Below are positions 10,935-45,433 of a stretch of 64,000 bases of DNA, in pieces. Source of the DNA: Mytilus californianus (lineage: Eukaryota); contig NW_026262690.1 of the NCBI RefSeq assembly GCF_021869535.1, positions 24,800,001 to 24,864,000 on the forward strand, written 5' to 3'. Position 1 is the first letter of the stretch; every line of letters begins with the position of its first letter. Below the pieces are notes generated by a model. That model was not told the DNA's origin, did no database searches, and worked only from the letters and a program-made list of their open reading frames with translations. A program made the position numbers and the translations under genes.

Positions 10935-11290
10935 AATGTTCTTATGTTGTGCTGTTACTCCACTGTCCCAGGTTATGTGGGAGGGTTGGGCGCTCGAAAA
11001 CAGGTTTAATCCCGCCGCTTTATGTTTCTGTCTGTCCCAAGTCAGGAACCTGTAATGCAGTGGGTGTCGTTTGTTGTTCAATGTTGTGTATCATTTTTTT
11101 TTTTTTTTTTTGTGTATTGATTTTTTACATAAATCAGAACGTTAGTTTTCTTGTTTGCATTGTTTACATTTGTCATGTCGGGGTCTTTTATAGCTTGCTA
11201 TCCATATGGGTGACCCATAGTTGCTAACTTCAACGTAACTTGATCTTTGGTGGAAAGCTCATTGGCAATCATACCACAGTTCCTTATTTT
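10935..11290 (+). repeat. Dispersed repeat family B (twister-bearing, fixed 3' end TCATTGGCAATCATACCACA...)
   Basis: Similar by eye to 45195-45680, 1436-1725, 49140-49315 and 51760-51960. Short 3' pieces at about 13285, 43765 and 61020. Confidence 0.8.
10960..11063 (+). ncRNA. Type-P5 twister ribozyme copy (family B), P3 degenerate
   Basis: P5 CAGGU/ACCUG plus outer CCACUG/CAGUGG; GAGGG 10981-10985; UAA 11007-11009; CGCC; P4 UCUG/CAGG with loop UCCCAAGU. Confidence 0.7.
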
Positions 11291-11464
11291 AAATTGATAG
11301 AGATCATTTACATGCAGAAATGCCTTTCTTAGCCCTTGAAAAATTTTGGCAAATACAATTTAGCATATAATTGAGGAGTGTGCTAAGCCTTTTAAAACAA
11401 ATGTGTACTTTCTGATGCCATAATGGTTAATAAAGCAGTAATGGGTTTATATCTTTAATCATTC

Positions 11465-11647
11465 GGAGTTTAGTGTGATGTCCATTTTCCACTGAACTAG
11501 TATACATTATTGTTTAGGGACCAGCTGAAGCCCGTCTCCGGGTGAGGGATTTTCTCGCTGTGTTAAAGATCCATTGGTGGCCTTGGGCTGTTTTCGTTCT
11601 TTGATCTGGTCGTTGTCTCTTTGACACATTTCCATTCTCAATTTTAT
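11465..11647 (+). repeat. Dispersed copy of the 3'-terminal segment of the Sec-type Naiad
   Basis: Aligns to 58705-58895, same terminus TTCCATTCTCAATTTTAT. A minus-strand copy lies at 22431-22580 and a short piece at about 13378-13410. Confidence 0.85.
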
Positions 11648-13923
11648 TAAGTATGTTGACTCCACCAAACTTTATTTGGTTAAAATCCTTATTTTCTATA
11701 TTCAAATCCAGTAATCAAAATGTTATTTAATTGTCAGGCAATTATTTACCGCATATTTATTATACTAATGGGAAAAACTGACACGCTTGTTTCTCAGCAA
11801 ACGGTTCCTGTTTACTAATAACCATGATAATTGTCATTAATATTTGGAGCTTAATACCAGACTCCGCTCACAGGCGAATGATATATTTTATTTTTTTAAT
11901 ATTGAATATTAAGATATTAAACATACAAACAACAAAAAACAAATACGCAAATTAAATGCAATGGAATCAACAACATATCAACCTGATTGAAGATGGGTAA
12001 GTCATGTGACTTAAACCTTTTTGTATGTTATTCTTAGATGTTCAGTCATTGGTGTGTTAACTGTTTCCATATAAAGTATTTGTTCTAAAGTATCACCATC
12101 TCTTTTGAAGTGTCTGCACACCTGACAATGTTAAAGTAAAATAAAACAGTTAAATGAAAAATTGCCATAAACATACCATGACACAAAATTTATAAATGAA
12201 AAAAAGTCTTTTCTTGAAACAAATTGGTACTTAAAATAATTTCATAGTAATGCATATGCCATGCGTTTCCTGCAATTAACTTCATGTATAACACAGAACA
12301 ATCTAAAGACACATATGTATGCCTAAATAAGGGAAGAATATTACTAACAGTCGATTTCCGTTTATGAAATTGATTACTTCAAGTGACATGCATGTATTTG
12401 TGAAGTTTTTTCTTGAAATACTTTTAAACATCTGATTCTTTATAATAACATGTCATGAGAAGTCACTGACGAATAAGGGTGATTAGGGGGTATCACTTTT
12501 GAAGACAAATAAGGACAATATAAATACAAAAACATATATATAAAAATAGAAAAATAAATCGTATATGCAATAATTATTACAAGATTTGCTTCCTCATTAG
12601 GTATAAGGTACAGGCCACATTTATCGACCACTGGGAGTTTTTTTTATTGCTTTTAGATCTAGAGGGATTACTACATAGAGGTCAATATCGTAGACTTTTT
12701 TTACAGCATAAGATATGGAACTTTTTTAATGTAACGTTTTTGGTATGTTAGGTTTTACATGTTAAATGATACAGGAAGTTTTGTGATACAAATATCAATT
12801 GAGCAGCTTTATCAATCATGAAAACCACAAGGTAGCAAGGTAGCAGTAGATACCAGTTTTAGGGTACCAACACAAGTGTGACGATTTAACAAAAACTTGT
12901 TCCTGTCACCTTATAAAAAACAATAAGATATATGTTGGGAAAATATTTTGCTTTCAGCATATGATATATATTGAGTTCAGAGCAAATACACTTTTGTTTC
13001 ATCAACAGTAAAGATGTATATTGAAATATACTCATGAATGCTAAGTATTCATTTTCTGAGAGAAAAAAAAACATGAATTAATTTCAGTAGTTCTCTTGAG
13101 TTCTAACTATAATATATTTATATAAATTTATTATTCATATTTACGCAGATACGTAACTGTAGGAGAAATAGTAGTGTGGATTCTTTCTGTTATTTGACAT
13201 TATGCAATGATAAAAATCTGACAATTTTACATATAAGTATTCTGCAAAATGATCATAGTCCACGTCACGTCATTTGAACTCGGGTGGATAGTTGTCTCAT
13301 TGGCAATCCTACTACATCCCCTTATATTTATATAAACTAATATATATTATAGTGTTCGTTGCAAAATCAACGATCAATAAATTGAGAATGGAAATGGAAA
13401 TGGGGAATGTAAAGACTCGATATCAATTTAATGTTATTCAAGACTACGACGTTAGGTACATGTAAATGTATGTCCGATTTTGTCACCCGTAATGAATCTA
13501 CTCTGATTGCTCTAGATTCTACTCCCATAGAATGCATGATTGTTACAGACATAAAATGTATTTCATACCTTTTTTGTTGCAGGGTCAGAACCAAAAGTTA
13601 ATCGACCGAGACTTTGAGATTCAACTTTTATTTCAGACTCTGTGAATGTCCCTTCTTCTATTTCACATACACCTAAAAAAAAAAGGATCTCCTGAAGTTA
13701 AAGAGAAACTAACAGTTGTTTGAAGACTTGATATTTTGATGTTCAACAATCGATAGAATCAATGCATTCGGTCAGATAAATTAGGCGGAGCTCTAAACTC
13801 AGAACGACTGAATGGATTAAAATAAGGCATGTTAATCTGTGTATTAAAACAGGGCATATAAAAACTGTGCAATAAAATAACATTAACCGTACCAATTTTA
13901 CTGCATTTCTCCACCATCTGTCG

Positions 13924-13927
<4 letters not shown>

Positions 13928-13957
<30 letters not shown>
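13928..13957. repeat. (TA)n microsatellite
   Basis: About 15 perfect TA units read directly. Confidence 0.95.
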
Positions 13958-13958
<1 letters not shown>

Positions 13959-14238
13959 CAATTTCCGTTCACATTTGTGCTATTCTCGTCACCAAAATCG
14001 GAGTCAAATCAAACAGTTGTATTCAGTTAGCCCAAATCGTTCCGGCCATTTTTTTAGATGGGCCCTCAGCTCCCTCCCCTTTCTTGAAAATCCTTCGTCC
14101 GCCATTTCGAATTGTCATAAACGAACGGAGAAAAAAATAAAACTAAATAAAAGGAACACTCACTTAAATGAATAGTCTTAGAAGTTAGAAGTCATAAGGT
14201 CGAAGGTGAAATATAAGTTGTGTCATACAGATAAATAT

Positions 14239-14749
14239 AACTAGATATCATTGAGATGGGAGCCATCTCTGTGGGCCCCGCTGTGAATAATGTGTGGTAA
14301 AAAATTTGTATCTTTATCATTTGACATGGGGTTGTCAAATGAAACCAAAGTTTTTGACCTTGACCTTTGACCTAGGAAGTTGTACATAAATTATGACACA
14401 CTCTCTGGTGTTGGTTTATATACATATCAAGTATAAACTTTGAAATCATAACGGTTCTCAAGATATAGAGCGGACACGATCTTTACCATAGGACATGGAG
14501 TTGTCAACTAAAACCAAAGTTTTTGACCTTGACCTTTGACTAAGGAAGTTGTACATACATTATGACACACTCTCTGGTGTTGGTTAATATACATGTCAAG
14601 TATAAACTTTGAAATCATAACGGTTCTCTAGATATAGAGCGGACACGATTTGTTACGGACGGACTGACAGACGGACGGACGGACGGACGGACGGACGGAC
14701 GGACAGACTGATCACTATAGGGCGTCCGCCATTCGGCGGGGCCCTAATT
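14239..14749 (+). mobile_element. Non-autonomous Helentron/DINE-1-like element carrying two ~169-bp tandem monomers and a (GGAC)n microsatellite
   Basis: 5' hairpin GAGATGG/CCATCTC; subTIR GGGCCCCGC (14274-14282) inverted to GCGGGGCCC (near 14735-14743); monomers 14311-14479 and 14480-14649; GGAC/ACAG run 14657-14708; 3' stem-loop TAGGGCGTCCGCC-ATTC-GGCGGGGCCCTA. Confidence 0.8.
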
Positions 14750-14819
14750 AGGAAATTAAAATAGTATAACCAAGCTTATATTCTGCCCATCTCACATTTC
14801 CGTCGTACTTTCTCAGAAA

Positions 14820-15850
14820 CTAAAATGTATGAATTCTTCAAAGGCATTGTTTTGTATAAAGAAAATGCTTTATTCTGATTAAACAGACATTTTTTTCTCA
14901 TATGAAACTTTTTGATCCTTGTGTTGGTCCAATTATGTTTTATTGTAGTGAAATATGGTCACTTAATATTGTAAACAACAACAAAACACTTGAGTCACAA
15001 TATTTGTCAATGGAATCAGGAAAACTTCAAATCAAGAGTCTACTTGGAGTTAACTCTATGGCAGTAAATACAGCTGTAGTAGCTGTATTAGGAATGTTCT
15101 CTATTGGTATTCAGGCTCTCAAGTCTTCTACAGGATTCTGGCTGCATTTTTTAAACTCAAAGGAGTCTTTACTTTATAAAGTTTATAAAGTTAACCAGCA
15201 ATTACGTGATGGATTTGTTTCAAAAATTAAAATTTTACTCTCCAAATTAAGTTTTTCTCATGTTTGGGAAAATCAATGTACTTTTTCTAAAAAACCGATT
15301 ACTTTCAGCTTTAGCAAAGAAACTTAAGGAAAGTTACAATATATTTTGGGAAAATAGCCTTTTAATGATGACAATTCAATAAATGGAAATATTAAGTTAA
15401 GAACTTGTAGAAAATTTAAAGTAAAGTATGAACTTGAAAAACGTCTTTTATTAAATTCATATAAAAATGGTATTAAATAAAGGCAACAGTAGTATACCAC
15501 TGTTCGAAATTCATAAATCGATTGAGAAAAAAACAAATCCGGGTTACAAACTAAAACTGAGGGAAACACATCAAATATAAGAGGAGAAGAACTACGACAC
15601 AACAGAAAGACAACATTAAAAACTATGCCAAAATAAGAATAAGTAACAGCACGCTAGCTATTGAACGTGGTATATAGGTATAATAAAACAGCTTTAGAAA
15701 AAGATTGTGCCCCTTATGTAATATAGAGGTGGAAGATGAATTCAATTTTGCATTAATGTGTACACAACTCAATTACTCTAGAATGAAAATGTTTAATGAC
15801 ATTTATGATATTGTTCCTAGTTTTATTTCAATGAGTAATGGGGGGGGGGA
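14820..15850 (+). pseudogene. 3' fragment of a non-LTR retrotransposon (LINE) ORF2, decayed and interrupted by a repeat at about 15480-15620
   Basis: KLFD.CVGPIMFYCSEIW, LLGV...N.AV...LG, VWENQ and KLRT..KFK motifs. After the insertion: IRISN.TLAIE.G and the Zn-knuckle LCPLCNIEVEDEF.F.LMC. Contains stops and frameshifts. Confidence 0.8.
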
Positions 15851-16962
15851 TTTAATTTAATTTTCTCTTTTAAAGAATATGACATTTTGATAAATTATTG
15901 TTAATGGCATAAATGAGATGTATAATTACAGAAACAATAATATTGTAACTATAATCTAAAATATGAATTAATAAAATAGAGTTAAGCAGCATTTCTTCTA
16001 AATATAATCATTTTATGCTAATTTAAAGGGGAGGCATGTCGTCTAACATTTTAATATTGTTTGTAAATGTTACATATTTGTATTCTTATCTTATCTTATC
16101 TTTAACTTATTTGCGACTATATTTGTGTCATTTGAATACGTTTAGGCAGGGTCTCCCTGAACTGCCTCTGAACAAGACCTGAAACGTTTATTTAACAAGT
16201 TGTATGACGCGTTTCAGATAGCTCGTGAACTTCATGTTAGTCGAATAATTTTTACAAAAACGTATGTTTTTTTTTCACAAAGAACACATGATTACACTTA
16301 ATTTTCATTACATTTTTCTCTGCGACAAATTTTCTTGCCATCTTGGTATTTGATAACAAAATTTATTCTTTTTTTTTTTTACAAGCATCCATTGTATTTT
16401 TTTCAAACAGCTGATAGGATTGTATGATGATTTCTCATCGTTGTAGATGATCCCTTTTGAGTCGCGTTGGGGAAGAAACGATTATTTTATACCATTCCGC
16501 TGTGTGTTTTTGCATACATCTTTTCTCCGTGTTTTATATGTGAAAAGGCAAGTTCAACAATTCATACACATACCACCCACAGTGCAAAATATTGCACTGA
16601 GTTGTCGGCATTTAAATGACAATATATATACAATCGGTAAAAATCGGACTAATATTGTTCAGACTTACCAAGATTGTGCGCAATAATGAAGGCTATTTTA
16701 TCAGAGTCTGGTTTGCGACGAATGAAACCAACCTCCCTGTGCAATGGTTTGTTTGTCTCTGGATGCCAAGAATATGCCCTTAAAAGAAAAATAACCACGA
16801 ACAGTAAACGTATTTGGCTATAATGAAATACAAATGTAACGTTTTCAATGGAAAAAAAAAAAAACAGAACCGTCTCGTGACTTTTTTTGGTCTACATGTA
16901 ATTACAAAAAATGTATTTCTATGCTGTTACAAATAAACTGAATATGCAAAGTACATACTTAA

Positions 16963-17178
16963 AAAGTAGGATGGGACTTTAAATAAATGATCACCTATAA
17001 AGAAGGATTGGACTTTAAACAAATGATCACCTATAAAGTAGGATGGGACTTTAAACAAATTATCACCTATAAAGTAGGATGGGACTTTAAACAAATTAAC
17101 ACCTATAAAGTAGGATTGGACTTTAAACAAATGATCACCTACAAATTAGGATGGGACTTTAAACAAATGATCACATAA
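16963..17178. repeat. Minisatellite, 36-bp unit x6
   Basis: Unit AAAGTAGGATGGGACTTTAAACAAATGATCACCTAT, head-to-tail, no spacers. Confidence 0.95.
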
Positions 17179-18913
17179 TAGATTTACATGATTCATTTTA
17201 CATCATAATCATACTGATGGATATCTGATTAAAACAAAATAAAATTCGAATATTTCAAATTTACTCGTTTTAAGTCACAGCTGTTCAAAGTCCAGAAAAG
17301 TAAACATATAGCGACGTTTTAGATTTAAATGAACGTCATCTATGTATAACTAGTAAATGATTTATAACGATTCGTTACCACGAGTTACTTAAAACATGTA
17401 CTACAATCATTCCCTGATGAGTAAGTGCATGGGTCAATTGCTGCGGCTTTAATTCGTATGTGAATACCTATTTGTTGTAATTTGTACATCATTAAACTCC
17501 CTTAAATGGATATAATCCTATAAACGGGATTTATTCAGATAACTTACGAAAACTGAATATTAGGCTGCCCAACATGCACGAATTCCAATTCTTCTACATA
17601 GGTAAAGTCTGTAATGGTTGGATATTTGCCTTTGCCAACTTCACCTCGCCATTTCCCTAACAACCACGACAAAGGCTTTATAAGTTCGTGCATCCTTTCT
17701 TGAATATAATATTAAAATCGGATTTCGTTAAAAGCACATTTAATATCACAATCGGCTGACACCTAACGTTATATCTTATATTGCACAAACACTCGCAAAT
17801 AACAAAATGCTGGGAATGTTTCATGGAAGTGGATTATGTCGCATCATCTTTCTCAAATCATCAAACAAATTTTTGAATAGCAAATCAACAAAATTTTATA
17901 ATCAAAACACTATATAGATTTACTGAACATTTTAATAGTTTAACCATTAAACGGAAGCATATCATAAAATTATCCTTTGGGCAGGGTGATTTTTTTTTTT
18001 CTGACGGTTTATTCGTTGTCATCTTTTGCAAGTACGCCCACCTAAAAAAATCAAATGGTCATACCCTAACAGTAAATTTTGATCACATCTGAAGGACTTT
18101 TTTTAAATTGGCTTTTGTGTGAAATAAATAACTTTTAAAGGCACCAGATGCGCATCACGACAACCAATGTCTTCAGTGATGCTTGAGGCCAAAACATTTG
18201 AAAATCCAAAGGCTGACTTGTCCACAATGATATAAGGAAAGAAACAGAGCTATTGCAAGAAGAAAAATTGGCCCAACCTCTTTGAAATGGCCTATCCGTT
18301 CACAGTTTTTCAAGCTCGTATTTCCGTGTTACAAGGGAGTTAACTCGATTTTCCTTAGTTTATTTTTTAAGGAATCACAACGTAAACAAACATTTGTTTT
18401 TAAATTAGCAACTTCCCCTTACCGTGACGCCTCACGTAAAAATGTAGCAAGAAGGATATGCAATAACATAGTAAAAATGTATATAACATAATATAAAATT
18501 ATACACAACATTAACACATCAATAAAGATACAAAAAGAATAAACAAAATTTGAAGGACGGTAATAGGTGATGGAAAACTTACTTCCCAGTTGAGACATCA
18601 CTCACTCAGGAAAAGATACGAACACTATCCGGATTGAAATAAAAATGGTATTTGATTTAACAGACTGGGAAGAAGTAGGAGAATACATTATGCGTGACCA
18701 TCTTCATCGACAATGATTTTTTAATCTACTCTTAAACGATTATTCTAAATGCTTTAGATCGTTAGGAAAATTGATATATAATATACAGTTCATACAAACG
18801 GCAGTACAAAAGGTGCACCAAGTTACACCAAAAATGAGAAAAATAAAAGAAGTTTATTTAATGAATGAACAATATTTTTTTCTTAAATGACAACTATTAC
18901 ATCTATTACGTCT

Positions 18914-19603
18914 GATTCAGTATCAGTTGTCCTATGTAAAGTAGCGGACTCGTTTGGTTCAGTATGATTATCAGTTGTCCTATGTAAAGTAGCGGACTCG
19001 TTTGATTCAGTATGATTATCAGTTGTCTTATGTAAAGTAGCGGACTCGTTTGATTCAGTATCAGTTGTCCTATGTAAAGTAGCGGACTCGTTTGATTCAG
19101 TATCAGTTGTCTTATGTAAAGTAGTGGACTCGTTTGATTCAGTATCAGTTGTCTTATGTAAAGTAGCGGACTCGTTTGATTCAGTATCAGTTGTCCTATG
19201 TAAAGTAGCGGACTCTTTTGATTCAGTATCAGTTGTCTTATGTAAAGTAGTGGACTCGTTTGATTCAGTATCAGTTGTCTTATGTAAAGTAGCGGACTCG
19301 TTTGATTCAGTATCAGTTGTCCTATGTAAAGTAGCGGACTCGTTTGATTCAGTATCAGTTGTCTTATGTAAAGTAGTGGACTCGTTTGATTCAGTATCAG
19401 TTGTCTTATGTAAAGTAGCGGACTCGTTTGATTCAGTATCAGTTGTCCTATGTAAAGTAGCGGACGCGTTTGATTCAGTATCAGTTGTCTTATGTAAAGT
19501 AGCGGACTCGTTTGATTCAGTATTAGTTGTCTTATGTAAAGTAGTGGACTCGTTTGATTCAGTATGATTATCAGTTGTCCTATGTAAAGTAGCGGACTCG
19601 CTT
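18914..19603. repeat. Minisatellite, 42-bp unit x16 (three 48-bp variants)
   Basis: Unit GATTCAGTATCAGTTGTCYTATGTAAAGTAGYGGACTCGTTT. Units 2, 3 and 16 carry a 6-bp insertion (GATTAT). Confidence 0.95.
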
Positions 19604-19822
19604 TTTTTTAATTATTATTAATTCAATCCATTCAATAGTCATTGAATTTTTCATTTTTTGTCGCATTAAATTTTCAATTTAAATTTCGATATCGTTCCCC
19701 AAGCAAGATTCGAACTCGAGCTGTGGAGAAACCAAGGGTACCATCGTCTGCTGTTTGTCCAGCTCACTCGTTTTACTAATTAAGTTCTGTACTAATCCAG
19801 TATATAAAAAATATAAGTACAC

Positions 19823-20068
19823 TTCGGTAGTGATAGGTGCCTTTCCTCGTTGGGTGTTTCTAAGGACATGAATTCGGTAGTGAGATGTGCCTTTCCTCAT
19901 TGGGTGTTTCTAAGGACATGAATTCGGTAATTAGAGGTGCAATTCCTCGTTGGGTGTTTCCGAAGACACGAATTCGGTAGTAAGAGGTGCCTTTCCTTGT
20001 TGGGTGTTTCTGATGACATGATTTCGGTACTGAGAGGTACCTTTCCTCGTTGGCCGTTTCGAGGACAA
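19823..20068. repeat. Minisatellite, 50-bp unit x~5
   Basis: TTCGGTA recurs at 19823, 19873, 19923, 19973 and 20023. Confidence 0.9.
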
Positions 20069-21067
20069 GATGGCAGTGGCTTGGAGATTGTACAGATGCA
20101 TTTTGTATATCTGAGCGGTATATGTATTTTTTAAATTATGTTCAATTTATTATACAGGTTGGCAGTAATATTGGTCTTGTATTACAGTCATGTTTGTGGT
20201 GGGATTTTTACAAATCAGGTGATAAAAGGTGTATAATTTTCTGAAGTTTATTCGTTTATCTGGTTATGTTGATAGTGTCTTCAGTTATATTTGTTTTTTC
20301 CTGAACACACATAACTTAATATTTCCTTTGATTGGCGACTGATAATTTGCTGTCGGTTTTCTGTGTGGCTTATGTGATTAAATTTTTCCTCTTGGAAGGA
20401 TTCCTATCGAAAAATATTTCATGTTTCATGTTCCTCTCTCGTTAAATGTGACATGCATATTATATCAATAAGAATTGTGAAGGATCTTAGATGAACGTTT
20501 GGTAAATTACAGCTTCACGCTACAAAAGATACATTTTGATATCTGCAGTTAAAATGTCCCTGAGTTGACTGTACTAGAGTACCTCATTTTCAATATTTTG
20601 ATGTATTTACCAACCTTTTATTCGAATTTTCAATTATAAAAATGGACATTTCTGAGAATTAACAGCCAAAGAGTTTTATATTAATATCTCTACTGAAATT
20701 TGTTTGCAATTATTTAACAACTAGTTTTATGAATAATATTCCTCATTTTGAAGTTTAAATAACAATGCATTAAAATCCAACATTCTATGCGTGATTGATA
20801 ACAAAGCATATCACAATGCACTTTAAAACAATTTGTGCAAGCAGATCACGTAAAAGATCTATCGCTGGAAGCATATTTCTGAAATTACTAGGTTGCTCTG
20901 TCAACAGCAGTTGTGATTTATGAACAGTATAATATAAAAGAATATCGATAAGTTCTGTTTTATACTGTTCCACTTGAAACCTAAGCTTACTGATTCTTTA
21001 AAAATCTATTTGTTTAATTGTACATGGAATTTGAAACTGAATATGCACAAAGAACAAAGCAGTTGAA

Positions 21068-21128
21068 ATGACGAGCTCCAAATGTTTATTTGTGTTATCA
21101 ATATTAGGATTGCCTCTTTCTGTAAAAG
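21068..21128 (+). CDS. Gene 1 coding exon 1: signal peptide MTSSKCLFVLSILGLPLSVK(G)
   Basis: ATG, hydrophobic core, phase-1 donor AAG|GTTAGT compatible with the phase-1 acceptor at 26597. Confidence 0.65.
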
Positions 21129-24120: not shown

Positions 24121-25099
24121 AAGATCAAACCAAATACCAACTTGAAGTTAAAAAATATGCCAAATCCGGCTATTGCAATATATGCTTACAGTGTAAGGGC
24201 TTTCGGAGCGAGGAGGATAGAAAAACCTTATTGTTTCGAACAATTCGACGTTTTATAAATAGTTAATTTACAGAAAATGAACATATTAATAGTGGATATG
24301 GCGCAGAAAAATTATGAGTTCTTATATTTAGAAATAAGTTTTTGGTTTTATAATACACAAAAATGATAACAGAAATAATAAAAAAAATAAAGGATAGTAC
24401 ACAACAAAGACAAACAACACACACATGGTGAAGATTGCCCTATAGTTGGTACAGACACAAATGTGGTGGAGATAAACCAATTGTACGTAAAAACAAAATT
24501 TCAACGGTGGTCATGTTTGATGGGTTTGATAGGTTATCTTAAAGAGAGTAAAAGTATCATCTCTTTACATCAACTATTAGATCATTTTGAATTTTCAATT
24601 TTCAATACTGTGTTGTTTGGATATAATTGCATTTTGATTCACATATAAGAAATCTTTAGTTAATCATCTGGAGTGAAATCAGACCCAAATTCAGTTATAG
24701 TATTCAAGGTATAAAAATTTAAGCTGTCTGAATTATACAATATATTTCTGAATTAAAGAATCCAAGAGAGTACAAGAACAGCATATGTTCAGAAAAATCT
24801 TAGACAGAATGGGCACAGGATGTTTGCGCTTTTCCCCCTGTAACACGAAAGGCCATTTGCGATGTTACCTATAAGTTCTTGATGAGGTGTAAGCATAACG
24901 CGAATAAAATCAACTTATAATTGTACCATTCTTCGATTTAAAACGAAAACTACATTCCTAGTGTGTTCATTGTATTGCCTTGAAAGTCATAGGAAATTTA
25001 TCATGATTGTATATTTAAGCTAATTTCAATTTTTGTAAATCAAAAAAAAAAATTTTTTAAACCAAGTGAGCGGCTGTTTCTACATAAATGTACATCCCT

Positions 25100-25209
25100 G
25101 GAGTAAGTTTGACACAAAAACTTACGACTAAGATTGATCGTAAGTATACTGAATTGTTCATGACTTACGACCAATCTTAGTCGTAAGTTTTTTTTGAGAA
25201 ACCGACTCC
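25100..25209. mobile_element. Palindromic MITE-like element
   Basis: ~46-bp inverted arms (GGAGT...AAAAACTTACGACTAAGATTGATCGTAAGT) around a short spacer. Confidence 0.7.
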
Positions 25210-26736: not shown

Positions 26737-27663
26737 GTAAGATAATGCAAAGCTAGTGTGTATAATACATAAAAGTGATGACAGGAATGACAAAAAAACC
26801 GCACAGTACAACAGACCACATCAGCCATCAACACCTGAATCCTCCAAAAAATCCAACAGACATACAAACAACAACGGACATCCATGGTTCAAGTAGCCTT
26901 ACTTAGTACAGGCACAAACTATGGTGGGATTAAACAAGTTTTACGTGCGAAAAAATCTCCCCCTGTGTCAATTCAGACCATATGTCGAAAAAAAAACATA
27001 CAAAAAAACGACACCGTGCAGTTACTAATAGGATGACCACTATCAAGAACAAGGAAATAAAAAATATAATTTGTAAAGCAGGGTCAAAATGTACTCGTCA
27101 ATTAGGAGGCTAGCAAATTCAGCAACAGCTGTAAGTTAGATATTGCCGCTCAAGAAAAAACAAAATGAAAATGAAAGAAATTTTGCTTCGAAGGACATTG
27201 CTTAGTAAAATCACTTCATTTGTATCTGAACAATACGTAGATCACATGCATGATATTACATGAAGAGTTTTGTTAAGAATGTCTCTTTTATTTATTTTTT
27301 TTTGGAAAAAGTATTCAAAATTTGTCAACACCATCAAAATTGTTACCTGACAGTTGCATGATAAATAGTTCCAAACCCGAGGTCGATTTATTTCCAGCGT
27401 AGTATTTAGCGTTTTTTGTGCTGGCATGACACATCATTCATACGTTATTTTTCTATACATTTACTGTTTATACAATGCTAAAATTGTTCGAAACAGTATA
27501 GTTTTTATACCTCCTAGCAAAGATAGCTTTAGCCAGATTTATTTTTTTTTATCTTCAATGCTCTTCAACTTCGTTATTGATTTTGTTTCTGTAAATCAAC
27601 TGTTCAGCTAACACCACCGATGAATCTTGTATTGATAAATCGAGTCTGTTGTGCAATATATAA

Positions 27664-35100: not shown

Positions 35101-37396
35101 CCCACAAACTTTAGTTTTTAGTAACGGTGTTCTGATAAAATAGATATTAAAAAACTGGTTTTGAGATTCCTGTTTTCGTTTGATTAACGTACGACTTCTG
35201 TGTCATTTCTGCAACGATTTGAATAATTCGAATATGTGCACTTTGCCTATTTGGCAATTTCGTTTTCAACTTAAATTTTCTCATTTAGGTTTTGATGGCT
35301 ACCATTACTTATGTCCCTCAGATTTGGCCTCGTTTCCCACGGGTAACATTAGGACATTCTACGTAGAAGATACAATATGTAAAGTTGTAAATGGAACTGG
35401 ATTGCGGATTAAGATGCGGAAAGTCAAACTTAATTTCATTAATGAACTCGCACGTTAAAATGCGACTCGGCGTTCTGGCCTAGTACAAAATAGGCTTCAT
35501 ATTCGTAAAACATTAGTTGCTTGTTTTCTCTCTTGTAAACATGTGATATTTACCACTGGAAATTTCACAATTATCACCCGGATCATTATCATCTTTTCTA
35601 CAGACAAAATTGAATGCAGTTGTTAATTACTCTACACCTAAATTTTGTTTAACACTGGTTTACAAAACAACTTCCTTTTTCACAAATATCTTTTAGTTTA
35701 GTTTATATTATTTTTTAAGAAAAAGAGGCGGAAGATACCAAGGGAACATTCAAAACTCATAAGTTGAAGAGAAAATGACAACAACATGCCAAAAAAAAAA
35801 AAAAAAAAAAAAAAAAACGAAATGCAAAGAATAGACAAATATAGGCACTGAAATATCCCCATCCCACACAGATCCCTTTTTAAAGGGTGAAATTTTACAT
35901 ATGGGTTCATGAGATTCCAGACTCCAATTTAATATGAATTTAGGACATTGATTGGTCGGATAACACAAAATTTAATGTAGCATACAAGTACATTTTTTTA
36001 TTTTGAATTTATTTTTTTTTCAAAAACAATTTCTAAAAACAGACCAGTTATTGTTCAACACCCGAACTTTTTACTTTGTTCCAAATGTCCAAGAATTAAA
36101 AAAAGTAATTAACACGTCGGAATAAATCCGATGGTACCTTCACTTATAATTATACAATATGCTCTCTTAATTTTCAATGCCTATGAATTGCAATGTACAA
36201 TTTCGTAAATCGTCTAAATTGTGGTTGACCTTACATATTCCATCATTTTCTTCTTAAAAACTTCACATATTACCATCATATTTCTAAAGTACTCAACCAA
36301 AACACTTTTGTATCAATTGCTTGCATTATCTTCCTCGTCAATTCATTTGCTTTGTATATTTCTCGCAAAAATCTTTGGACACTTCTACGGTGGAAAATTA
36401 CAAGAAAAATAACTCCTTTTATAAAAATATGATTATACTAGATACGATAATTACGGAATCACCATGGGTGCATGAGTTGCGATCGTTCTAGATTTGTAGT
36501 TAAAGTAACAGTTTTTTGCTCGGGTGCAGGCTTACTTATTTGTTTTTTTGCGGGTTAGGTCTGTAAAGTATGTATGGTTCAATATAAATATTGTTGAACA
36601 ATTTGAGATATTTTAAAATGGGTTATATTCTGATGAAAGAATTTAAAAAAAGGAAATACTTTTTTCTTTCTTCCTTCTATTTTGGAAAGCATATTGAAAG
36701 TCTTGTCTCACAATCAGTGTTAATTTCAGTTGGACCCTAATCCTTTTTTCTTACCCTTTGACCTTAAATACTTCTTGCAATGAATACTTGCCATAATGTT
36801 GTTTGACTATGGTGGAGCAATCGATGACATATCCTTTTTCCATCGGTAAAAAGTTTGCTTAATCATAATTTTTGATCTATAAAATAAAAAGTTTTCAATT
36901 AGGTATCTATGTTAAAATTGTTTTTTAAAGTGTTGATTACCTGATGGAGTAAGTATAAATAGTGTAACAGCCTTCCAATCAAACCAAAAACAACATACAT
37001 GTGCTTTGAATGATTGTTTCTTATGTTAAATTTGTTTTTTAAAGTGTTGATTACGTGATGGAGTAAGTATAAATAGTGTAACAGCCTTCCAATCAAACCA
37101 AAAACAACATACATGTGCTTTGAATGTTTGTTTCTTTGTACCATGTACCATGTGACTTTACCGTTTTAAATATTAAAAGATACCAATTTGCAATAGAAAT
37201 GACCATCACTTTATAGTTTTGATTATTGATTTTATATCATTTTATAAGTAAACTTACTTATATTCATAATATAATATATTAATGATTTGGAAATGTTTTT
37301 TGATTCCTTAAAATACTTTTTTTAATTTTGTCTTTGATTGATTAAAAATTTCTATAACTTATAAAGGACTATAAGCAAGCTTTTCATGCTTTTAGC

Positions 37397-39300
37397 ATGG
37401 TGAGTTACATAACAAGACAAAGAGGCTCTGAAAATGTTAATCAAAATATACAGAATAAAATAATTATGTCAAAGTCAAAGAGGGTGCTCCATTTCATTCA
37501 TCGAATACAATTACAAAAAGAACTGCTCAATGTTTAAAGATAAGTGAAAGTTTTATCAACAAATTAATTAATAGGACAGGAGAAAATCAAGATTCAAATT
37601 CAAAAATTGCAGCCAGAAAGGATACGCTTGACCAGTTTGACAAAGATTTGATAAAAAACTACTGTTCATAAGTTATTTCGAAAAAAATGAATGTGTTTTT
37701 AGGTACTGATGCTGTTTATCATATTAATTACGTGTTATAGTGTTTATTTAATTTGTCTTTGTATACTTTTAACCTTCACTGTTTAGTCCATTTTTGGTAA
37801 TATCCTTTTGGTGTGGCTCGGTTTTTATACACCCGCAATTGTATTATTATGCTATGGTCATTTTTTGTATTCTTGTCTTTCATTTTTTCTTATGTATTTT
37901 GTCTAAAGAGTATCTATATGCCATTTTGTTTTTCTTTGTTGAAATAGTTATTATGTTTTTAGTGATTAAGATTATAACACAATTTTGACTGCTGTACCCT
38001 AATTTTTGACATTTCTACCTAATATGTCTGTTTGTTTTGTTCACACATTGTTGTCAATATAATGGAATTCTATGCGACTGTGAGAGGTTTAGCTAGCTAT
38101 AAAACAAGATGTAATCCACCATTTTCTACAGAAGGAAATGCCTGTACCAAGTCAGGAATATGACAGTTGTTTTGCGTTCGTTTGATGTGTTTGAGCTTTT
38201 GATTTTGCCATCTGATCAAGGACTCTCCGTTTTGAATTTTCCTTGGAGTTCGGTATTTTTGTTAATTTACTTTTTATCTTAAAAAAACCGAAAACATATT
38301 TTGGAGAAAGACCATGATATTGTTTTATCTAAATGCAAGCTATGGAAAACCTTACATTGATTAGGATTCATATATAAAAATGTTGCTAAAAAAGAAAAGA
38401 TCTTGTTGAAAAAAAAGACATCATAAATCAATGTTTCCAATTTTAAAAACAATTAAGAAAAAACGTGAAGAAGGTTACACACCTATTTGTTTGGATGATA
38501 CATGGGTGGACACCAATCATACTACATCACATCAATGGACCAGTTCTGAAGAGTCGAAAAATAGATAAAAATCTCTAGGTAAAGGACAGAGATTTGTTGT
38601 GTTACATGCAGGTTATGATAATTTTTTGTAAACGGATGCGATTTACTTTTTAAGGGTAAGAGCACATAAATGAATGGTAAAATATTTGAACAATAGGTTG
38701 AGAAACAATTAGTTGCCGCTTTGCCACCAAAAAGTATTATAGTCATGGACAATCCATCATACCACAGTATCCGTGTTGAGGAAACAAAACCTTCAACATC
38801 TAACTCGAGAAAAGACGATATGAAGGGTATTTTAAATAAATTTGGTTTCGGATTTGACAGCAAGTTTACAGAACCAAATTTATACCAAATAGTTAAATCT
38901 AAGAAAATTGACCCTGTATTTAAGGTAGATGAATTCCTCAAAAAGAAAGAACATGAAGTACTTAGACTCCCCCTTACCATTGTGATTTAAACCAAATTGA
39001 ACTTATATGGTGTGATATGAAGGGAAAATTGGTCAGGCAAATTCAACTTTTAAACGTAATGATGTTAAATCACTTATCCATAAAGGATTTAACAAATTGA
39101 TAGTGTTATGTGATTAAAATCTTGTGATCATGTTAACAAAAATTATTGAACCGAGATATTGGCAAAATGATGCAATCCAGGAGGGAATTTAAAAAATTGC
39201 TATACACATTCAATCTGATTCTGAATCGGAGAGTGAAAAAGATAATTCTAATGATGGAGATGAGACTGAAGATCATGAATGGCCATTAAAATATATTTGA
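37397..39300 (+). pseudogene. DDE transposase pseudogene (Sailor/DD82E-like), interrupted by a repeat insertion at about 37700-38277
   Basis: HTH-like KRTAQCLKISE; LGFIYK; CLDDTW (D at 38494); GKGQRFVVLHAG; SIIVMDN (D at 38748); VLRLP-YHCDLNQIELIW (E at 38999); acidic tail. Many stops and frameshifts. Confidence 0.85.
38078..38166 (+). ncRNA. Type-P5 twister ribozyme copy (family C), P5 shortened by deletion
   Basis: GAGGU 38084-38088, UAAUCCACC, P3 AUUUUC/GGAAAU, P4 CCUG/CAGG with loop UACCAAGU. Confidence 0.65.
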
Positions 39301-40039
39301 TGTGAGAAATGTTTTTTTCCTTGCCCTTAACTTAAAAATAGCAAGTGTCATAACTCTTGTCTACTAACATAACATATGAAGGTATACATGCTATATTCAT
39401 TTTCATCTCATTTGCCTATAGAGTACTGTTTTACAAGTTTTTACTTTATCTGATATTTTCTATTTAGAACATGGACAATGGAGAATCCTATCATATGAAG
39501 AACAATTAAACAATCACATGACTTGAAATCTATTTTTGTTTGCCGGACAGTTAAGGTCGTCTTAATATTTAAAGTCACATAATTCAAAGAAACAAACATT
39601 CAAAGCACACGTATTTTGTTTTTGTTTTGATTGGAAGGCTGTTTCACTATTAATACTTACTCCATCAGGTAATCAGCACTTCAAAAAAATAAACTAACAT
39701 ATAGCCCTAATTGGAAACTTTTTTTAATTATAAACCAAAAATTATGAAATTAAAAGTCAGAGTTCGTATATATCATATATTAACATACATCAAGGAAAAA
39801 AAAATTTCTGCAAACATATAGAAGTCATATGGACTATACTTCTAATAAATCAATTTTGGATTTGAAACGGTCAGTTTGATCTGAACAGCTCTTAAAAGAC
39901 TGAACAATAAATTCTTTACTACAAAATTATTTTATATCTACCTGTGTGACGTCATACGCGCGATTCTAAAACCTTCCATCCTTTATGGGTGGATTTTACA
40001 TAGATAAATAAAATCGTAATAGCAAAATGAGGATGTTAA

Positions 40040-40415
40040 ATTTGACGTATGTCTTTTTGTGCTTCTTTGTTACATTTGTTTGTTTTTATAGTGAATAAGA
40101 TGATAACACAATGTTGACTGCTGTACCCCTATTTTTGACATTTTTACCTATTGTGTCTGTTTGTTTTGTTCACGCATCGTTGTCAATATAATGGAATTTG
40201 ATGCGACTGTCATACAAGTGAGAGGTTTAGCTAGCTATAAAACCAGGTTCAATCCACCCTTTTCTACATAAGAAAATGCCTGTACCAAGTCAGGAATATG
40301 ACATTTGTTATCCATTCGTTTGATGTGTTTGAGCTTTTGATTTTGCCATTTGATAAGGGACTTTCCTTTTTGAATTTTCCTCGGAGTTCAGTATTTTTGT
40401 GATTTTACTTTTTTC
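40040..40415 (+). repeat. Dispersed repeat family C (twister-bearing)
   Basis: Closely similar to 37950-38277; a 3' half lies on the minus strand at about 2870-3020. Confidence 0.85.
40208..40303 (+). ncRNA. Type-P5 twister ribozyme (family C), core apparently intact
   Basis: P5 UGUCAUA/UAUGACA; P2 UC/GA; G40222-A-G-G-U; scissile C40250-A40251; T2 A-U and C-G; P3 6 bp; P4 CCUG/CAGG; T1 ACC/GGU. Confidence 0.75.
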
Positions 40416-41383
40416 TTACGTCGTTCCAGTTTCTCGGTCAATTATTAGACTTATCCACTGCTGTAAATTCAGTACTGTTAAGACATTTAGCTTGCAGTCA
40501 ATTAAGATCTGTTTAGTCTATGTTCAGACAGTTAAGTAGCTGATATTTATTTACCTGTACAAATCAAAATCATACTGAACTGTTTGAAATGCTACTACAC
40601 AGCAACTGTACTGAATTTACCACAAGCGAACTGTCTGAACAGTACTAAATCTACCGCAGTGAATAAATCTGAAAATTGACTAGAAAAATGTACATGACTG
40701 AATATTCTATTGTTCAGATTTTTCAGATTTTTCAGATTCTTCAGATTCTGTTAAGATCAAAATGACAATTCCAGACTAAAATTCATTTACTAGTGATGGT
40801 TTTCTTTTTAGCTTTGGTTTTTCTGTCTCTTCAGTTATATAACTTATCAAAATAAAACCTTGATGATATTTAGGCGGTTTGTTGCCATACAAAGGGTGTC
40901 AAGTTCGACCATTTTTAAATCAATTTGTTGTTGTATAGCACCTAATGTGCAATCTCATCTGTTGCAATGGTTAATCATCCTGCTTTCCTTCATCAACTAT
41001 TATATGCACCCAACACTGTGTCAGATTTGTTGTAATATTTCCTATATTGATAGATTTTATATGATAAAGACATAATCTTTCGACCAGTCTAATTGAGGTC
41101 TGGAGCTGGCATGTCAGTAACTGCTAGTAGTCCTTTGTTAATTTATGTTGATCATTATCATTTTGCTTGGATTAAATAGTATTTTTTCAATAAAACAAAT
41201 CATGATAAAATAGATAATACATTATGATCAATTAGATTCAGAAACAAGCAACATTGCTTATCTTAATTTGTCTTCCAAAAAATGATGACACACAACATAA
41301 TGGTGGGGCATTTTGAATGAGTGTGATTCGCATGACGGGTGATGGATGCATAACAGGAGATACTTATCCTGTCGTCGCACCAA

Positions 41384-41524
41384 GGCCTACTATGGTCATA
41401 AAAATTTACTAGGAACTCTGAGTACAAAATATTTTACTCGAAACACCAAATCCAGCATTTTGGTTGGTTGAATTCTGAGTCTGAGTACGATAATCGTACT
41501 CAAAAGTTTTATGACCACAAGGCC
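41384..41524. mobile_element. MITE with GGCC-initiated TIRs (PIF/Harbinger-like)
   Basis: GGCCTACTATGGTCATAAAA ... TTTTATGACCACAAGGCC inverted ends. Confidence 0.6.
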
Positions 41525-43321
41525 AGAGCTATCACCTTTTGTAGTTCATGCGATTTCCTCAGTTTTTGTTTGTTACCTTGTTTTGTGTCTTCCAAATCGA
41601 TTAACGAGATTTGAACTACTGTTGCCTAAACTTAGTGTGGTTAGGTTGTGTCTTATTGACGCATAACTCAAATCTCTATTAATGCAAATAGTATCTCAAT
41701 GGTTTTGATATATCAACGGTCTTCAATAAACACTAACGTTTAAATCATGAGAATATTTTTGTAAATTCATTTAAACTGAAATTAAGCAAAAATAAAGCGG
41801 GTCGTTTTTTTTCAACAATACACTACCCTGTCTCAGTAACTGATGTCGTGGTTTTCTGTTGTATGCATACATAGCTATTTAGAAATTCATTTATACTCGC
41901 ACTTGTGCGGGTTACTTTCTAAAATATACACACACAAAAAATAAAGATAAAACAGCAATATAAAAACAGGAAATATATCTGTAGGCCAATATACTGTGTT
42001 CCAGAGGACAAGTGTGTTAATAATATGCCAAGTTCTAAATGAATCGTTGACTAATACCAATTCAACAGAGATTAACAAAGACATGCTGCTTTGAAATTCG
42101 TTAAAAGAAGATGCTTTCACGGAGACACACTTGAAATCAATTTTTCAGTCTATTTAGAGGTAGGAAATATTTTTGTCGTGTCTTTCCTAGATTAGACAGT
42201 ATTTCATGGAAATTCTAATTACCAGACAATAAGGGAAACATTTTGCGTGATGAGAAATTGCAAAAAAGAAATACTGCCGGATAAGCTTGTCAAACCCCCA
42301 GGATGCTGCTTGTCAATCTGAACCAGTATCAACAATTATAATAGGCGTTTTAATTTGAAATGCATTTCGAATGATCTGTAATATTGATGTTATTTAAAAT
42401 TATGTTTCAGATAAAACATGCATACATATTTGTTCATACATTATCGTGATGACACATAAAAATCATGAACTTATAAATGTAAGAGTCTGATTCAATATAG
42501 GAACTGAAAATAAAGAGTCGGATTGGAATCGTTCTCACTTCTTTTGACAAGACTTTAGTGAGATTATTCTAGTAACTTTACTTAGTAGTAACATTTCAGT
42601 TTTAATGACTCGATTTGGTCAATAATGTTTTATCGAGATTTATCCGGTCGATGAGGGTCCGTTGGTACGTTTGTGTCGAAGAAATGTTGAAAAAAGTCAC
42701 TTCATTTTTGTTGTGATAAGAGATGTAAATGAAAAAAAACTCTACATGTGAGATATAGTAATGCCCTACTAAAAGTAAACTTCATGGAGACTATGAATAC
42801 AAAAAAAAGTTAATCAATGCAAACAAATTTAATTATATGTATACAGCTTTCTTTTCTCATTGAACTACAAATAGGTCTTGACAACCTCTTGCTTCACTTT
42901 ATATGATTTGAATATAATAAGGAAAGAGAATTGATTTAATTCAAGAAAACTTTGTATTCTAACTCTCTACAGTTAGAACTATTTCCGGAAACAATTTTTA
43001 CCAAACATGCTAGATGATATATATCGATAAATGAGTACATTGTATTTTCATATATATTTGTTTATTTCGTGATTGAAAATGATATAATATGATTTAATTT
43101 AGATGTAATATAATGATGCTTACCAGAGAGTTACCCTGGCTTTCACTAGAATGCTGGACTAGTTAAGTAAATTGTTAACAGCAATAGTGCAATATGTTGT
43201 TGAAAAAAAAGGAAACTTCTATTATTAACTACCATCACATCAATGCTATGCTAAACTTGCGTTTTAGTCAATATCTGCATGTTTATTTTAAACTGTATTT
43301 GTATCAAAGATTTTAAAAAAT

Positions 43322-43572
43322 TGTGCGGACTCACCGCTGTTGCCCCGACGGTTGGTATAAATTCAGCTTTTCTAAGAAATGTATGTCAGTATCGTTGCGC
43401 AAATCTAAAGACATATTTTGCCTCAGATTTAGCACAACAATGTTAGATCTGCAAATTTGCGTTAGTAAATTTTTGTTTTTTCCTCAGGGGGATTCGAATC
43501 CCTGCATCTGAGACATCGTGGCAACACTGCCTGCACTGTGTCCAGCGCCCTGGACCACTCGGCCAAATAGGC
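43322..43572 (-). mobile_element. tRNA-derived SINE
   Basis: Minus strand: A-box TGGCCGAGTGG (43555-43565) and B-box-like GGGATTCGAATCCC (43489-43502), followed by a non-tRNA body. Confidence 0.7.
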
Positions 43573-44974
43573 TATATAAATAAAGTTGTGGTTAGTCGAG
43601 TAATGCCTTTCCTCGTCGGCTTCATCTAGGGTTGTAACACAGTACATGATGTAAAGTGGCAAGTAAATGGTATGCCTTGTATATCAGTTATTATCTATAT
43701 AAAACACTTGATAAAAATATAACGAATGGTACAGGTTCAGTTCATAAAAAATACCAGGCATCTTGTGGAGAGTTGTCTCGTTGGCAATCATACCACATCT
43801 TTCTATTTATATATAATGAAGTATGTCAGATGCGGGTTTTGTCTACACAACATTCGCCAGTAGAGCTCGAAGAAAGTTGGAAGGTAAAATCAATATCGAA
43901 GTTTAATGCGCCTACAATCCTTTGCTTTGAGGAATTTATACATAGTTACAATGGCAAACATGGCCTTTACGAGAATCACTGTGAGTATCTCACTAGAAGT
44001 AGGAATTGATTACACTTCCGGAATATTTGAGTTCTTCCCAGTGGTAACACCGTCCATGTTTATCATATGTTTCCTAAGTATCCCTTTGTTTGTCACGTTT
44101 TTTTATTTTTTACTTATCCATAGATTCTGTGACTTACAGTTCCACGAATCAACAAATCAAGCCAATATTTCCTCTGTGTGCCTTACCTAAAATAATATTT
44201 AGCTACAATATGTCTTAATAAAACATTTTAAAGTGTGTAAAATATCTTTTTAGGTAAGGGCTTGACTTATATCTATTCCGTCTAATAGCTACAAATAATT
44301 TATGTATAAAAAGCCAGATAATGGCTCTTATCATACATGTACCTCCCTACGCCTTTCAACTATATTTTAACTTTTTTTACCGTAAAGGTTTATTCTAAGC
44401 AACGTGTGCAGGTCACTTGAAGTTCTGTATATAAATAAAAAAAAATATATAACAAAGAAAGAATTATAAAACCATTTTTACAGGTAAAATTAAATATATA
44501 TATATATTTATACATTATTTATATTGATTTTAAAGCATCTTTAATACCTTTGAAGCTATATTTATAAAAAAAGTTTGCCAGTTAGGAATAAAAAGGTGAA
44601 ATAAAACGATGATTTATCTTTGCTAATTTTGCATTAGTATGGGGCCAAAATCACAACAGCTACACTGAAAATATTCATTTTCTTTCTGTTAAATGTAAAA
44701 TGTTATGTGATACCCTATATACGTTTGTCTTTTTCAAATCGATTCTAACATCCTCCCAAATCGCAAAGAGTTATTTTTAATTATACTAGAGATATTTTAG
44801 GTAGAGGTTACTAAGGTTTAGATTTAGCCCATCACAACAAAAAGTGTACCTTTTCATTGCAAAATAATTATATAATGGTGTACTGATATTTTACTCTTAG
44901 AAACATGAATTTTCGTTTAGTTGTTATTGGCTTTGAACTAGCTTTCAGTAAAAAATGAAAACAACGCGTTATAA

Positions 44975-45192
44975 ATTTCATGCGTCCGAAGCGCTTTTCA
45001 GGATTTAACTTTATAGTTTAAGAGCTATATAACCAAACAATGACCTATTAAAATAGCCAAATCCACCTAAGGTCAACTTTGCCTGATGGAGTTGAAACCT
45101 TAGTTTCTTATAATATCAAAATTTATTAATGAACAATTTTTATCATGTCAGTACCGAAGTTTTGATTTCTGAGCTGATGATACCCTCGGGTT
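44975..45192 (-). repeat. Retrozyme-like repeat with a partial hammerhead (GAAAAGCGCTTC half)
   Basis: Reverse complement matches 26010-26290; the CUGAUGA half is lost. Confidence 0.55.
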
Positions 45193-45332
45193 TTAAAATG
45201 TCATGTGAATACTCTCAGATCTGTACTTTGTGTCTTTTGTGTTTTTGTTGGTGTTTTTAGTTTTGTATCGATCAGATGAGTTAAGTCCTTTTCAACTGAT
45301 TTTTATAGTTGTTCATATGTTGTACTGTTACA

Positions 45333-45433
45333 CCACTGTCCCAGCTTAGGGGAGGGGTGGTACAAGCAAGCCTGTTTAACCCCGTCACATTCTATATGTG
45401 CCTGTCCCAAGTCAGGAGCTCGTAAATCAGTGG
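45333..45433 (+). ncRNA. Type-P5 twister ribozyme (family B), near intact
   Basis: P2 CCC/GGG; G45352-A-GGGG; UAA 45377-45379; P3 ACAU/AUGU; P4 CCUG/CAGG; T1 UCCC/GGGG; outer CCACUG/CAGUGG. One C-to-U change in T2. Confidence 0.75.

Follow-up and report, generated by a model that had tools for sequence, protein, structure and literature searches.

Do several retroposon families of the mussel Mytilus californianus carry one and the same RNA fold of a self-cleaving class, and do they make use of it? The question was raised by a 64,000-nucleotide stretch of contig NW_026262690.1 (positions 24,800,001 to 24,864,000, forward strand; hereafter the window), for which a sequence-only reading had proposed that the twister ribozyme fold, with compensatory changes, sits in at least three dispersed repeat families. 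At least five lineages proved to carry the module, namely, the tail of a Naiad-type Penelope-like element and the short families B, C, D, and E, plus minor ones, and the five near-complete cores that had been read in the window (B1, B2, C1, C2, and a Naiad-tail core) were all confirmed in sequence. We establish here the architecture of the module, its conserved letters, and its covariation, and it is likely that a twister fold has been kept by selection in several abundant retroposon lineages. Self-cleavage of the intact copies is predicted from their sequence and is plausible, somewhat more likely than not. A processing role such as that proposed for hammerheads in Penelope-like elements, argued by analogy, would be less probable than self-cleavage itself.

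Architecture and covariation of the module

Our sample consisted of 90 genome loci and the window, supplemented by exact-pattern counts in the genome, and representatives of each sub-family were parsed for their architecture. In all lineages parsed, the RNA module runs from the 5′ strand of helix P5 through the 3′ strand of P2, GAGGN, a spacer, N|AA (the bar marking the predicted cleavage site), the 5′ strand of P2, R-C (belonging to pseudoknot T2), the P3 hairpin, a G, P4 with its loop L4, and an A to the 3′ strand of P5, which is the order of a circularly permuted (type-P5) twister. GAGGN contains the catalytic G and one strand of pseudoknot T1. P4 and its loop read CCUG-UNCNAAGU-CAGG, L4 being UNCCAAGU, and the L4 scheme U-NCC-AAG-U supplies the partners of both T1 and T2; a conserved A follows directly after P4. 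Every lineage retains the G of GAGGN and the A that follows the scissile bond, and the base before that bond, N6, is U, C, or A, a variation that twister tolerates. About 19 of the 20 conserved twister positions, as well as the order of the motifs, agree with the Rfam Twister-P5 consensus line. The core letters that align to it are the A-A after the scissile bond, G-C(-C), the G before P4, the U-C-C-C-A-A-G loop, the A after P4, and G-A-G-G-G, the exceptions being the covarying T1/T2 positions and C31, which is replaced by U.

P2 is 4 bp long in Naiad, D, and H, 3 to 4 bp in B, and 2 to 3 bp in C and E. In every lineage, the place of P1 is held by a palindrome or hairpin flanked by UUG...CAA, examples being GAGAUCUC, GGCGCC, GGGAUCCC, UAGCUAGCUA, and GGCAUGCC or GGCUAGCC, and a second palindrome (AAAC-NN-GUUU) ends at N6, as in AAACAUGUUU, AAACUAGUUU, and AAACGUUU or AACCAGGUU. 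These spacer segments remain palindromic though their sequence differs between lineages. Unconstrained minimum-energy folds recovered P5, P3, and P4 together in five of seven modules, with P2 enclosing the P1 hairpin in two of them.

Pairs were counted in a MAFFT alignment of 21 diverse copies. T1 was paired in 96.8% of cells and had changed on both sides at two of its three pairs (GC 13 times and UA 7 times at one; GC 19 times, AU once, and GU once at another), T2 was paired in 97.6% (GU 13, AU 8), and the nearly invariant P4 was paired in 98.8%. Overall pairing was 88.6%, versus about 50% when the partners were slid by one column, and the covariation score of 0.220, versus at most 0.078 for slid partners, was reached by none of 500 shuffles. 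The states match lineage by lineage: T1 is GAGGG/UCCC in Naiad and B, GAGGU/UACC in C, E, F, and G, and GAAGG/UCCU in D, and T2 is G13·U31 in Naiad, B, and D and A13-U31 in the whole C-type group. Pair 9-44 of P2, which lies beside the catalytic G, is C-G, A-U (D), U-A (C), or U·G (H). The earlier assignment of GGG/CCC with G·U to B and Naiad, and of GGU/ACC with A-U to C, was thus correct, and the pairings identified as the twister double pseudoknot do covary between lineages. When we counted by hand, without preselection, the first 100 genome-wide matches listed, 50 had GGG/CCC, 43 had GGU/ACC, 5 had a mismatched T1, and 2 were artifacts. Two B-type copies (contig C1, 0.4 to 7.0 Mb) have GAGGG together with a UACC loop, and their T2 position 13 is A; they are a possible evolutionary intermediate between the B-type and C-type states.

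P2, P3, and P5 have diverged in sequence between lineages and have retained their pairing. A position-free longest-helix test of P5 was not significant (p 0.3 to 0.5) and was replaced by a test of the energy of the junction-adjacent duplex, which gave p values of <0.001 for Naiad, 0.004 for C, 0.01 to 0.1 for B, 0.02 for D, 0.07 for E, and 0.10 for F, six lineages whose P5 sequences are unrelated. No P5 was found by the junction-adjacent test in H, G, I, or the deleted C1 copy.

The module is abundant. The pattern GAGGKTT, followed by 25 to 55 bases and CCTGTMCCAAGTCAGG, matched 27,482 times in the 1.65-Gb genome (175 contigs), versus 0 for a reversed-pattern control, and the B-type cleavage-site 20-mer has 7,758 exact genome copies. 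In the window, the P4/L4 hairpin GCCTGTMCCAAGTCAGGA has 9 matches at three mismatches or fewer, with 0 expected. The cores sit in dispersed units, sharp at the 3′ end and ragged at the 5′ end, as seen for B, C, and the Penelope-like 3′ region ending at about 58895. The flanks had been called unrelated between families, and BLAST-level similarity is indeed limited to the stretch from the cleavage site to P4; all lineages nevertheless have GU-rich tracts on both sides of the core, and the B and Naiad tails show a distant similarity down to the 3′ terminus. From these sequence relations, B, C, D, E, and Naiad look like diverged descendants of one Naiad-type 3′ module rather than independent acquisitions.

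The host element carrying the Naiad-tail core is plausibly, though not provably, a Naiad. Elements of this clade encode an N-terminal GIY-YIG endonuclease followed by a reverse transcriptase, and some clam families have in-frame UGA codons and a selenocysteine insertion sequence (SECIS). The candidate coding region starts with a GIY-YIG-like N-terminal piece with in-frame UGA at Cys-like places and then runs into frameshifts. Its open reading frame pieces have no Pfam match above threshold (RVT_1 reaches only 13 bits), Atlas feature matches of 0.87 to 0.97 link it to clusters with HTH_animal, RVT_1, and GIY-YIG, and a SECIS_1 match reaches 22.9 bits, under threshold. TA repeats follow the tail.

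Evidence against cleavage and alternative explanations

A number of observations weigh against reading the module as a working twister, and several of these lie in the module itself. An Rfam scan of the whole window returned no twister, either at the gathering threshold or at E ≤ 10, and a whole-genome search with the Twister-P5 model (RF02684, clan CL00120; gathering score, 37.6) under default filters returned nothing, with 79 of 35,978 candidates scored. Twister-P5 was the top Rfam match in narrow scans of B2 (45349-45416; 20.0 bits, E 0.025), of the window Naiad copy with its damaged P2 (17.4 bits, E 0.095), and of L079, a Naiad-type copy with an intact P2 (23.5 bits, E 0.0028). These alignments set GAGGG, UAA, GC, and GUCCCAAG on conserved consensus letters, with P3 entering as an insertion and P1 being bridged by a local gap; the P2 of the window Naiad copy was misaligned because it has AGAG opposite CCCA. 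C2 and a D-type copy gave partial matches to parts of the twister-P1 model only, at 13 to 14 bits (14.2 bits, E 1.4, and 13.1 bits, E 3.4, respectively). Every Rfam score thus fell under the gathering score, the best being 23.5 versus 37.6 bits, with a covariance model that is unable to score pseudoknots. The sequence-only reading had named the twister-P5 model as a means of checking its proposal, and that check gave support below threshold only: Twister-P5 reached 17 to 23.5 bits, versus 37.6, in B2, the window Naiad copy, and L079, and the genome-wide search yielded no hit among the candidates scored.

The structure has weak points as well. There is no P1 helix adjoining the cleavage site, since the bases after GAGGN and those before N6 cannot pair in any lineage; P1 has been reported to be dispensable for weak twister activity (PMC8501958). 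P2 comprises just two or three pairs in C and E and is only 67.9% paired across the 21 copies in the MAFFT register, which is one column off for the C-types. The consensus C31 is U in every lineage, folding z-scores are ordinary (−2.9 to +1.1), and all five window copies are decayed. Finally, the lineages are diverged descendants of one module, which suits covariation analysis, yet their relatedness means that the double changes represent few events of independent origin.

Our tests for actual cleavage were negative or neutral. Four raw-read RNA runs were mapped on 40000-45700 at 88% likeness, and no pile-up of molecule beginnings or ends was found in them at 40250/51 or 45377/78. Reads span both predicted sites at depths of hundreds, and the two strands are covered about equally. 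This test is weak because transcription is two-stranded, the copies are mostly decayed, and only ends amounting to at least a fifth of the local depth are detected. In the genome, 17 copies start at A7, versus 84 at a control position 9 nt downstream, and in the main Naiad sub-family, 3 copies end at U6. We considered truncation at the cleavage site as evidence of cleavage and rejected it, as the sampled truncation points are scattered and genomic starts and ends are not enriched there.

Two other candidates for evidence of processing were also rejected. In a composite found at locus L006, the tail of a B unit is joined via TATAT-T to AACCCCGCC exactly at the predicted cleavage site. This composite occurs in 18 dispersed copies (e.g., G000:C1:62149690-62149718), all with one near-identical linker, which points to a single event that was later amplified. 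Tandem copies also occur, with a spacing of 312 bp between B cores in L003 and of 498 bp between C cores in L047, where the repeat includes 277 bp of other sequence. The tandem junctions, however, lie at unit positions 433→124 and ~280→108 and not at the cleavage site, so the arrays cannot be taken as ribozyme-defined units. Cleavage is still compatible with all of these results, since an RNA that is cut does not have to act as a template, the majority of copies are dead, and both strands are transcribed, but the tests lend it no support. The proposal that several retroposon families use twister for RNA processing is therefore upheld as regards a selected fold and not borne out as regards processing, given the sub-threshold Rfam scores, the lack of RNA ends, and the lack of a breakpoint excess.

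These negative results suit the idea of a structural RNA that has the shape of twister but makes no cut in vivo and is kept because its fold and palindromes are recognized by the Naiad reverse transcriptase/endonuclease or are needed for RNA packaging or dimerization. RNA reads without a cleavage signal, breakpoints that are not enriched at the site, the absence of P1, the short P2 in C and E, and the low Rfam scores are all as such an RNA would have them. So is the location of the module about 165 to 300 nt upstream of the 3′ end required by target-primed reverse transcription, since cutting there would part the template body from the priming end. However, no lineage has lost the letters that in twister serve mainly catalysis, namely, the G of GAGGN and the A following the scissile bond, even though the helices drift freely, and a recognition element would not need so close a copy of the whole twister core; the RNA-end result that speaks for this explanation is, as noted, a weak one. 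We consider a noncleaving structural RNA unlikely, if a serious contender. The families might instead go one step beyond self-cleavage, with B, C, D, and E behaving as twister “retrozymes” that are transcribed in tandem, cut by the ribozyme to unit length, circularized, and copied by the Naiad reverse transcriptase. The tandem copies in L003 (B) and L047 (C) and the 18-copy B sub-family that joins unit tail to cleavage site could be read in this way, and a preprint has concluded that animal hammerhead retrozymes are non-autonomous Penelope-like sequences (10.64898/2026.07.22.740005). Yet neither unit ends nor tandem junctions are set by the cleavage site, the majority of copies stand singly, sharp at the 3′ end and ragged at the 5′ end, the 18 junction copies go back to one event that was amplified, out of at least 7,758 B copies, and no circle-specific joints were present in the RNA reads mapped on 40000-45700, which leaves a retrozyme cycle improbable.

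Chance likeness to twister, in a conserved repeat core under no structural constraint, has very little to recommend it. A covariance-model match of 20 to 23 bits is admittedly weak at the 1.65-Gb scale, and the ordinary energy z-scores and the nonsignificant position-free P5 test point the same way. But chance does not readily produce matched double changes in a 3-bp pseudoknot that the covariance model leaves unscored, nor T1 matched in 93 and mismatched in 5 of the first 100 genome matches listed, nor a junction-adjacent P5 in six lineages of differing sequence, and the slid-partner controls collapse.

The explanation that we favor is one homologous module, probably a twister of permuted, type-P5 order that lacks the usual P1 and has a palindromic spacer instead. 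It would reside in the 3′ region of Naiad-type Penelope-like elements and of their short non-autonomous relatives B, C, D, and E. Selection on master copies would maintain it, most genomic copies, including all five in the window, being neutral, decayed offspring. The RNA would cleave itself between N6 and A7, and the cut could serve to trim tandem or read-through transcripts, as has been proposed for hammerheads of other Penelope-like elements. Cleavage may take place only when two copies pair via their palindromes, in which case single-copy templates would be spared self-destruction. A bolder version, speculative and in our judgment rather unlikely, is that Naiad-type elements, described as a ribozyme-free clade, carry a P1-less permuted twister that is active only as a dimer paired through the covarying palindromes and would thus be the functional equivalent of the dimeric minimal hammerheads in other Penelope-like elements, with B, C, D, and E as non-autonomous “twister retrozyme” partners, so that two unrelated ribozyme classes would have been recruited convergently for one step of the same retrotransposition cycle.

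Copies in the window and their units

All five near-complete cores lie on the forward strand, and the cleavage sites that had been predicted for C2 and B2 (40250|40251 and 45377|45378) fit the twister N|A rule. The B2 core (45333..45433) begins with P5 (45333-45338 with 45428-45433), the 3′ strand of P2 (45348-45351), and GAGGG (45352-45356, of which 45354-45356 belong to T1). The predicted cleavage site, U45377|A45378, is followed by the 5′ strand of P2 (45380-45383), T2 (45384-45385), P3 (45386-45390 with 45396-45400), and P4 (45401-45404 with 45413-45416), which encloses L4 (45405-45412, with the T1 partner at 45406-45408 and the T2 partner at 45411-45412). Its minimum-energy fold consists of P5, P3, and P4. 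B2 is decayed in that T2 is doubly wobbled (G·U and U·G) and the P1 region has no palindromes. B1 (10960..11063; predicted cleavage at U11007|A11008, P4/L4 hairpin at 11030-11047) is likewise a decayed copy, with a supported P5 (p 0.014), a mismatch in P2, and a poor P3. The B unit around B2 occupies 45200..45680 on the forward strand; BLAST start and end histograms gave it a ragged 5′ end and a sharp 3′ end, and its tail resembles the Naiad tail.

In the C2 core (40207..40304), P5 (40207-40214 with 40297-40304; p 0.004) is followed by the 3′ strand of P2 (40218-40221), GAGGU (40222-40226), the predicted cleavage site C40250|A40251, the 5′ strand of P2 (40253-40255), T2 (A40256 and C40257), P3 (40260-40265 with 40271-40276), and P4 (40279-40282 with 40291-40294) with the L4 sequence UACCAAGU at 40283-40290. 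Its P2 has two contiguous pairs, or three with a bulge, and at 40259 C2 does not have the letter of the family majority, A being found there in some 90% or more of the RNA reads. C1 (38078..38166; predicted cleavage at U38112|A38113, hairpin at 38140-38157) lacks the 5′ strand of P5 because of a 9-nt deletion relative to C2. The copies of the C unit, which around C2 covers 40040..40418 on the forward strand, are 95 to 99% identical, and family C is therefore young. Family C sequences are also present in raw-read runs labeled as several related organisms, and one RNA run that contains the family is labeled “mollusc metagenome.” In all four RNA runs, reads at 40209-40248 that derive from other copies contain a joint back by 40 nt with 11 inserted letters, which points to a C sub-family whose spacer (P1) region is tandemly duplicated.

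The Naiad-tail core (58567..58657), with P5 at 58567-58576 and 58648-58657 (p < 0.001), GAGGG at 58583-58587, predicted cleavage at U58610|A58611, and the hairpin at 58630-58647, lies about 285 nt before the 3′ end of the element (~58895) and has a folding z-score of −2.9; its P2 is damaged, AGAG lying opposite CCCA. Since the window copies are decayed, in vitro cleavage of 40208-40303 or 45333-45433 could fail for uninteresting reasons.

Half copies had been listed near five further positions. Three are indeed truncated: a D-type P4/L4 hairpin with a UCCUAAG loop (1441..1458, forward strand), cut short at its 5′ side inside P3; a C-type hairpin (2980..2997, reverse strand), 5′-truncated at P3; and a B-type copy (60800..60870, forward strand; listed at 60825), 5′-truncated in the P1 region and with a degenerate hairpin. 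The copy at 26895..26966 on the reverse strand is instead a degenerate full core of H-type, with GAGAU, a UACUAAG loop, a 4-bp P2, and no P5, and the one at 24440 on the reverse strand is barely recognizable. A fragment at 3101..3274 (reverse strand) corresponds to the upstream half of the Naiad tail (equivalent to 58442-58612), and ceases to resemble it 2 nt beyond the predicted cleavage site; the instance is isolated, only three such ends occurring genome-wide in the main Naiad sub-family.

The last ~50 nt of the B-type tail (GGAGAGTTGTCTC...CATCTTTCTATTT) also stand alone at 43761..43812 on the forward strand, followed by a TA repeat. This isolated tail has the highest RNA depth in 40000-45700, with more than 2,000 reads per run and loose ends on both sides, which suggests that many repeat families share a B-type 3′ tail module. 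The arrangement is consistent with a shared 3′ recognition module and with the (TA)n target preference of Naiads (PMC8557442).

Three further structures were noted in passing. At L089:1269-1330, a C-type core passes from P4 directly into the 3′ half of a SECIS-like sequence (GGAGGGATTGTGCCTGATATT) and appears to be a Naiad tail, chimeric or with a deletion, that has the twister module fused to the SECIS. L056:1-3116 contains a direct duplication of 2,074 to 2,075 bp at 98 to 99% identity, with an E-type core in each copy; no open reading frame with a family match was found in this duplication. A long near-perfect inverted repeat at 25100-25209 of the window matches the plant MIR1319 model at 37.5 bits (gathering score, 116.6) and is probably a hairpin like that of a miniature inverted-repeat transposable element, not a microRNA gene.

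Comparison with known systems

The twister class is widespread in eukaryotes. What is new here is a permuted, P1-less, sub-threshold module of twister type in a new class of host element, and we found no paper describing it in the literature searched on twister with Penelope-like elements, Naiads, or bivalves. Naiads have been reported to be without canonical hammerheads, and the paper describing them is silent on twister (PMC8557442). If the module cleaves, it would fill the place of the “missing ribozyme” in the Naiad clade, which is dominant in bivalve genomes, and would bring into the twister class tens of thousands of sequences now missed at Rfam thresholds. If it does not, it would illustrate how a ribozyme fold can be put to a new, structural use. 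In the covariation from lineage to lineage, nature has itself tested the T1 and T2 pseudoknots by mutation.

The closest relative in form is the type-P5 twister (RF02684). Both have the same order of elements (P2 3′ strand, GAGGG, P1 position, UAA, P2 5′ strand, GC, and P4 with the GUCCCAAG loop), both pseudoknots, and the N|A context of the cleavage site. The mussel module differs in its low scores (17 to 23.5 bits, versus 37.6), in always having a P3 hairpin, which is scored as an insertion, in having two palindromic segments instead of a P1 helix by the cleavage site, and in its pseudoknots: the T2 partner of G13, a C in the consensus, is replaced by U (giving G·U or A-U), and T1 is GGU/ACC or AGG/CCU in some lineages.

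A precedent within retrotransposons is Perere-3 of Schistosoma mansoni, an RTE element with type-P1 twister variants at its 5′ end, where the element starts at the cut and target-site duplications abut it; these variants function in Perere-3 retrotransposition (PMC8501958). Truncated twisters at RTE 5′ ends have also been mentioned in a review as unpublished work (PMC7761336). Perere-3 and the mussel families share a twister-class motif in an abundant retrotransposon with P1 imperfect or missing. In the mussel, however, the motif is permuted and internal to the 3′ region, and the site marks neither the start nor the end of copies. Should the module cleave, it would be the second documented role for twister in retrotransposons after Perere-3.

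Hammerheads of Penelope-like elements act as dimers. The minimal hammerheads of canonical Penelope-like elements and of animal retrozymes resemble the mussel module in being small motifs of a self-cleaving class (with activity predicted in our case) within a repeated 3′ or pseudo-long terminal repeat (pLTR) region, accompanied by non-autonomous derivatives. The mussel module, moreover, has a palindrome where a closing helix is expected, which suggests activity in the dimer only. The role of the Penelope-like hammerheads is itself described as unclear (PMC8557442). The mussel module belongs to a different ribozyme class, and its palindromes in place of P1 offer a second class in which to test the idea that ribozymes of Penelope-like elements depend on dimers.

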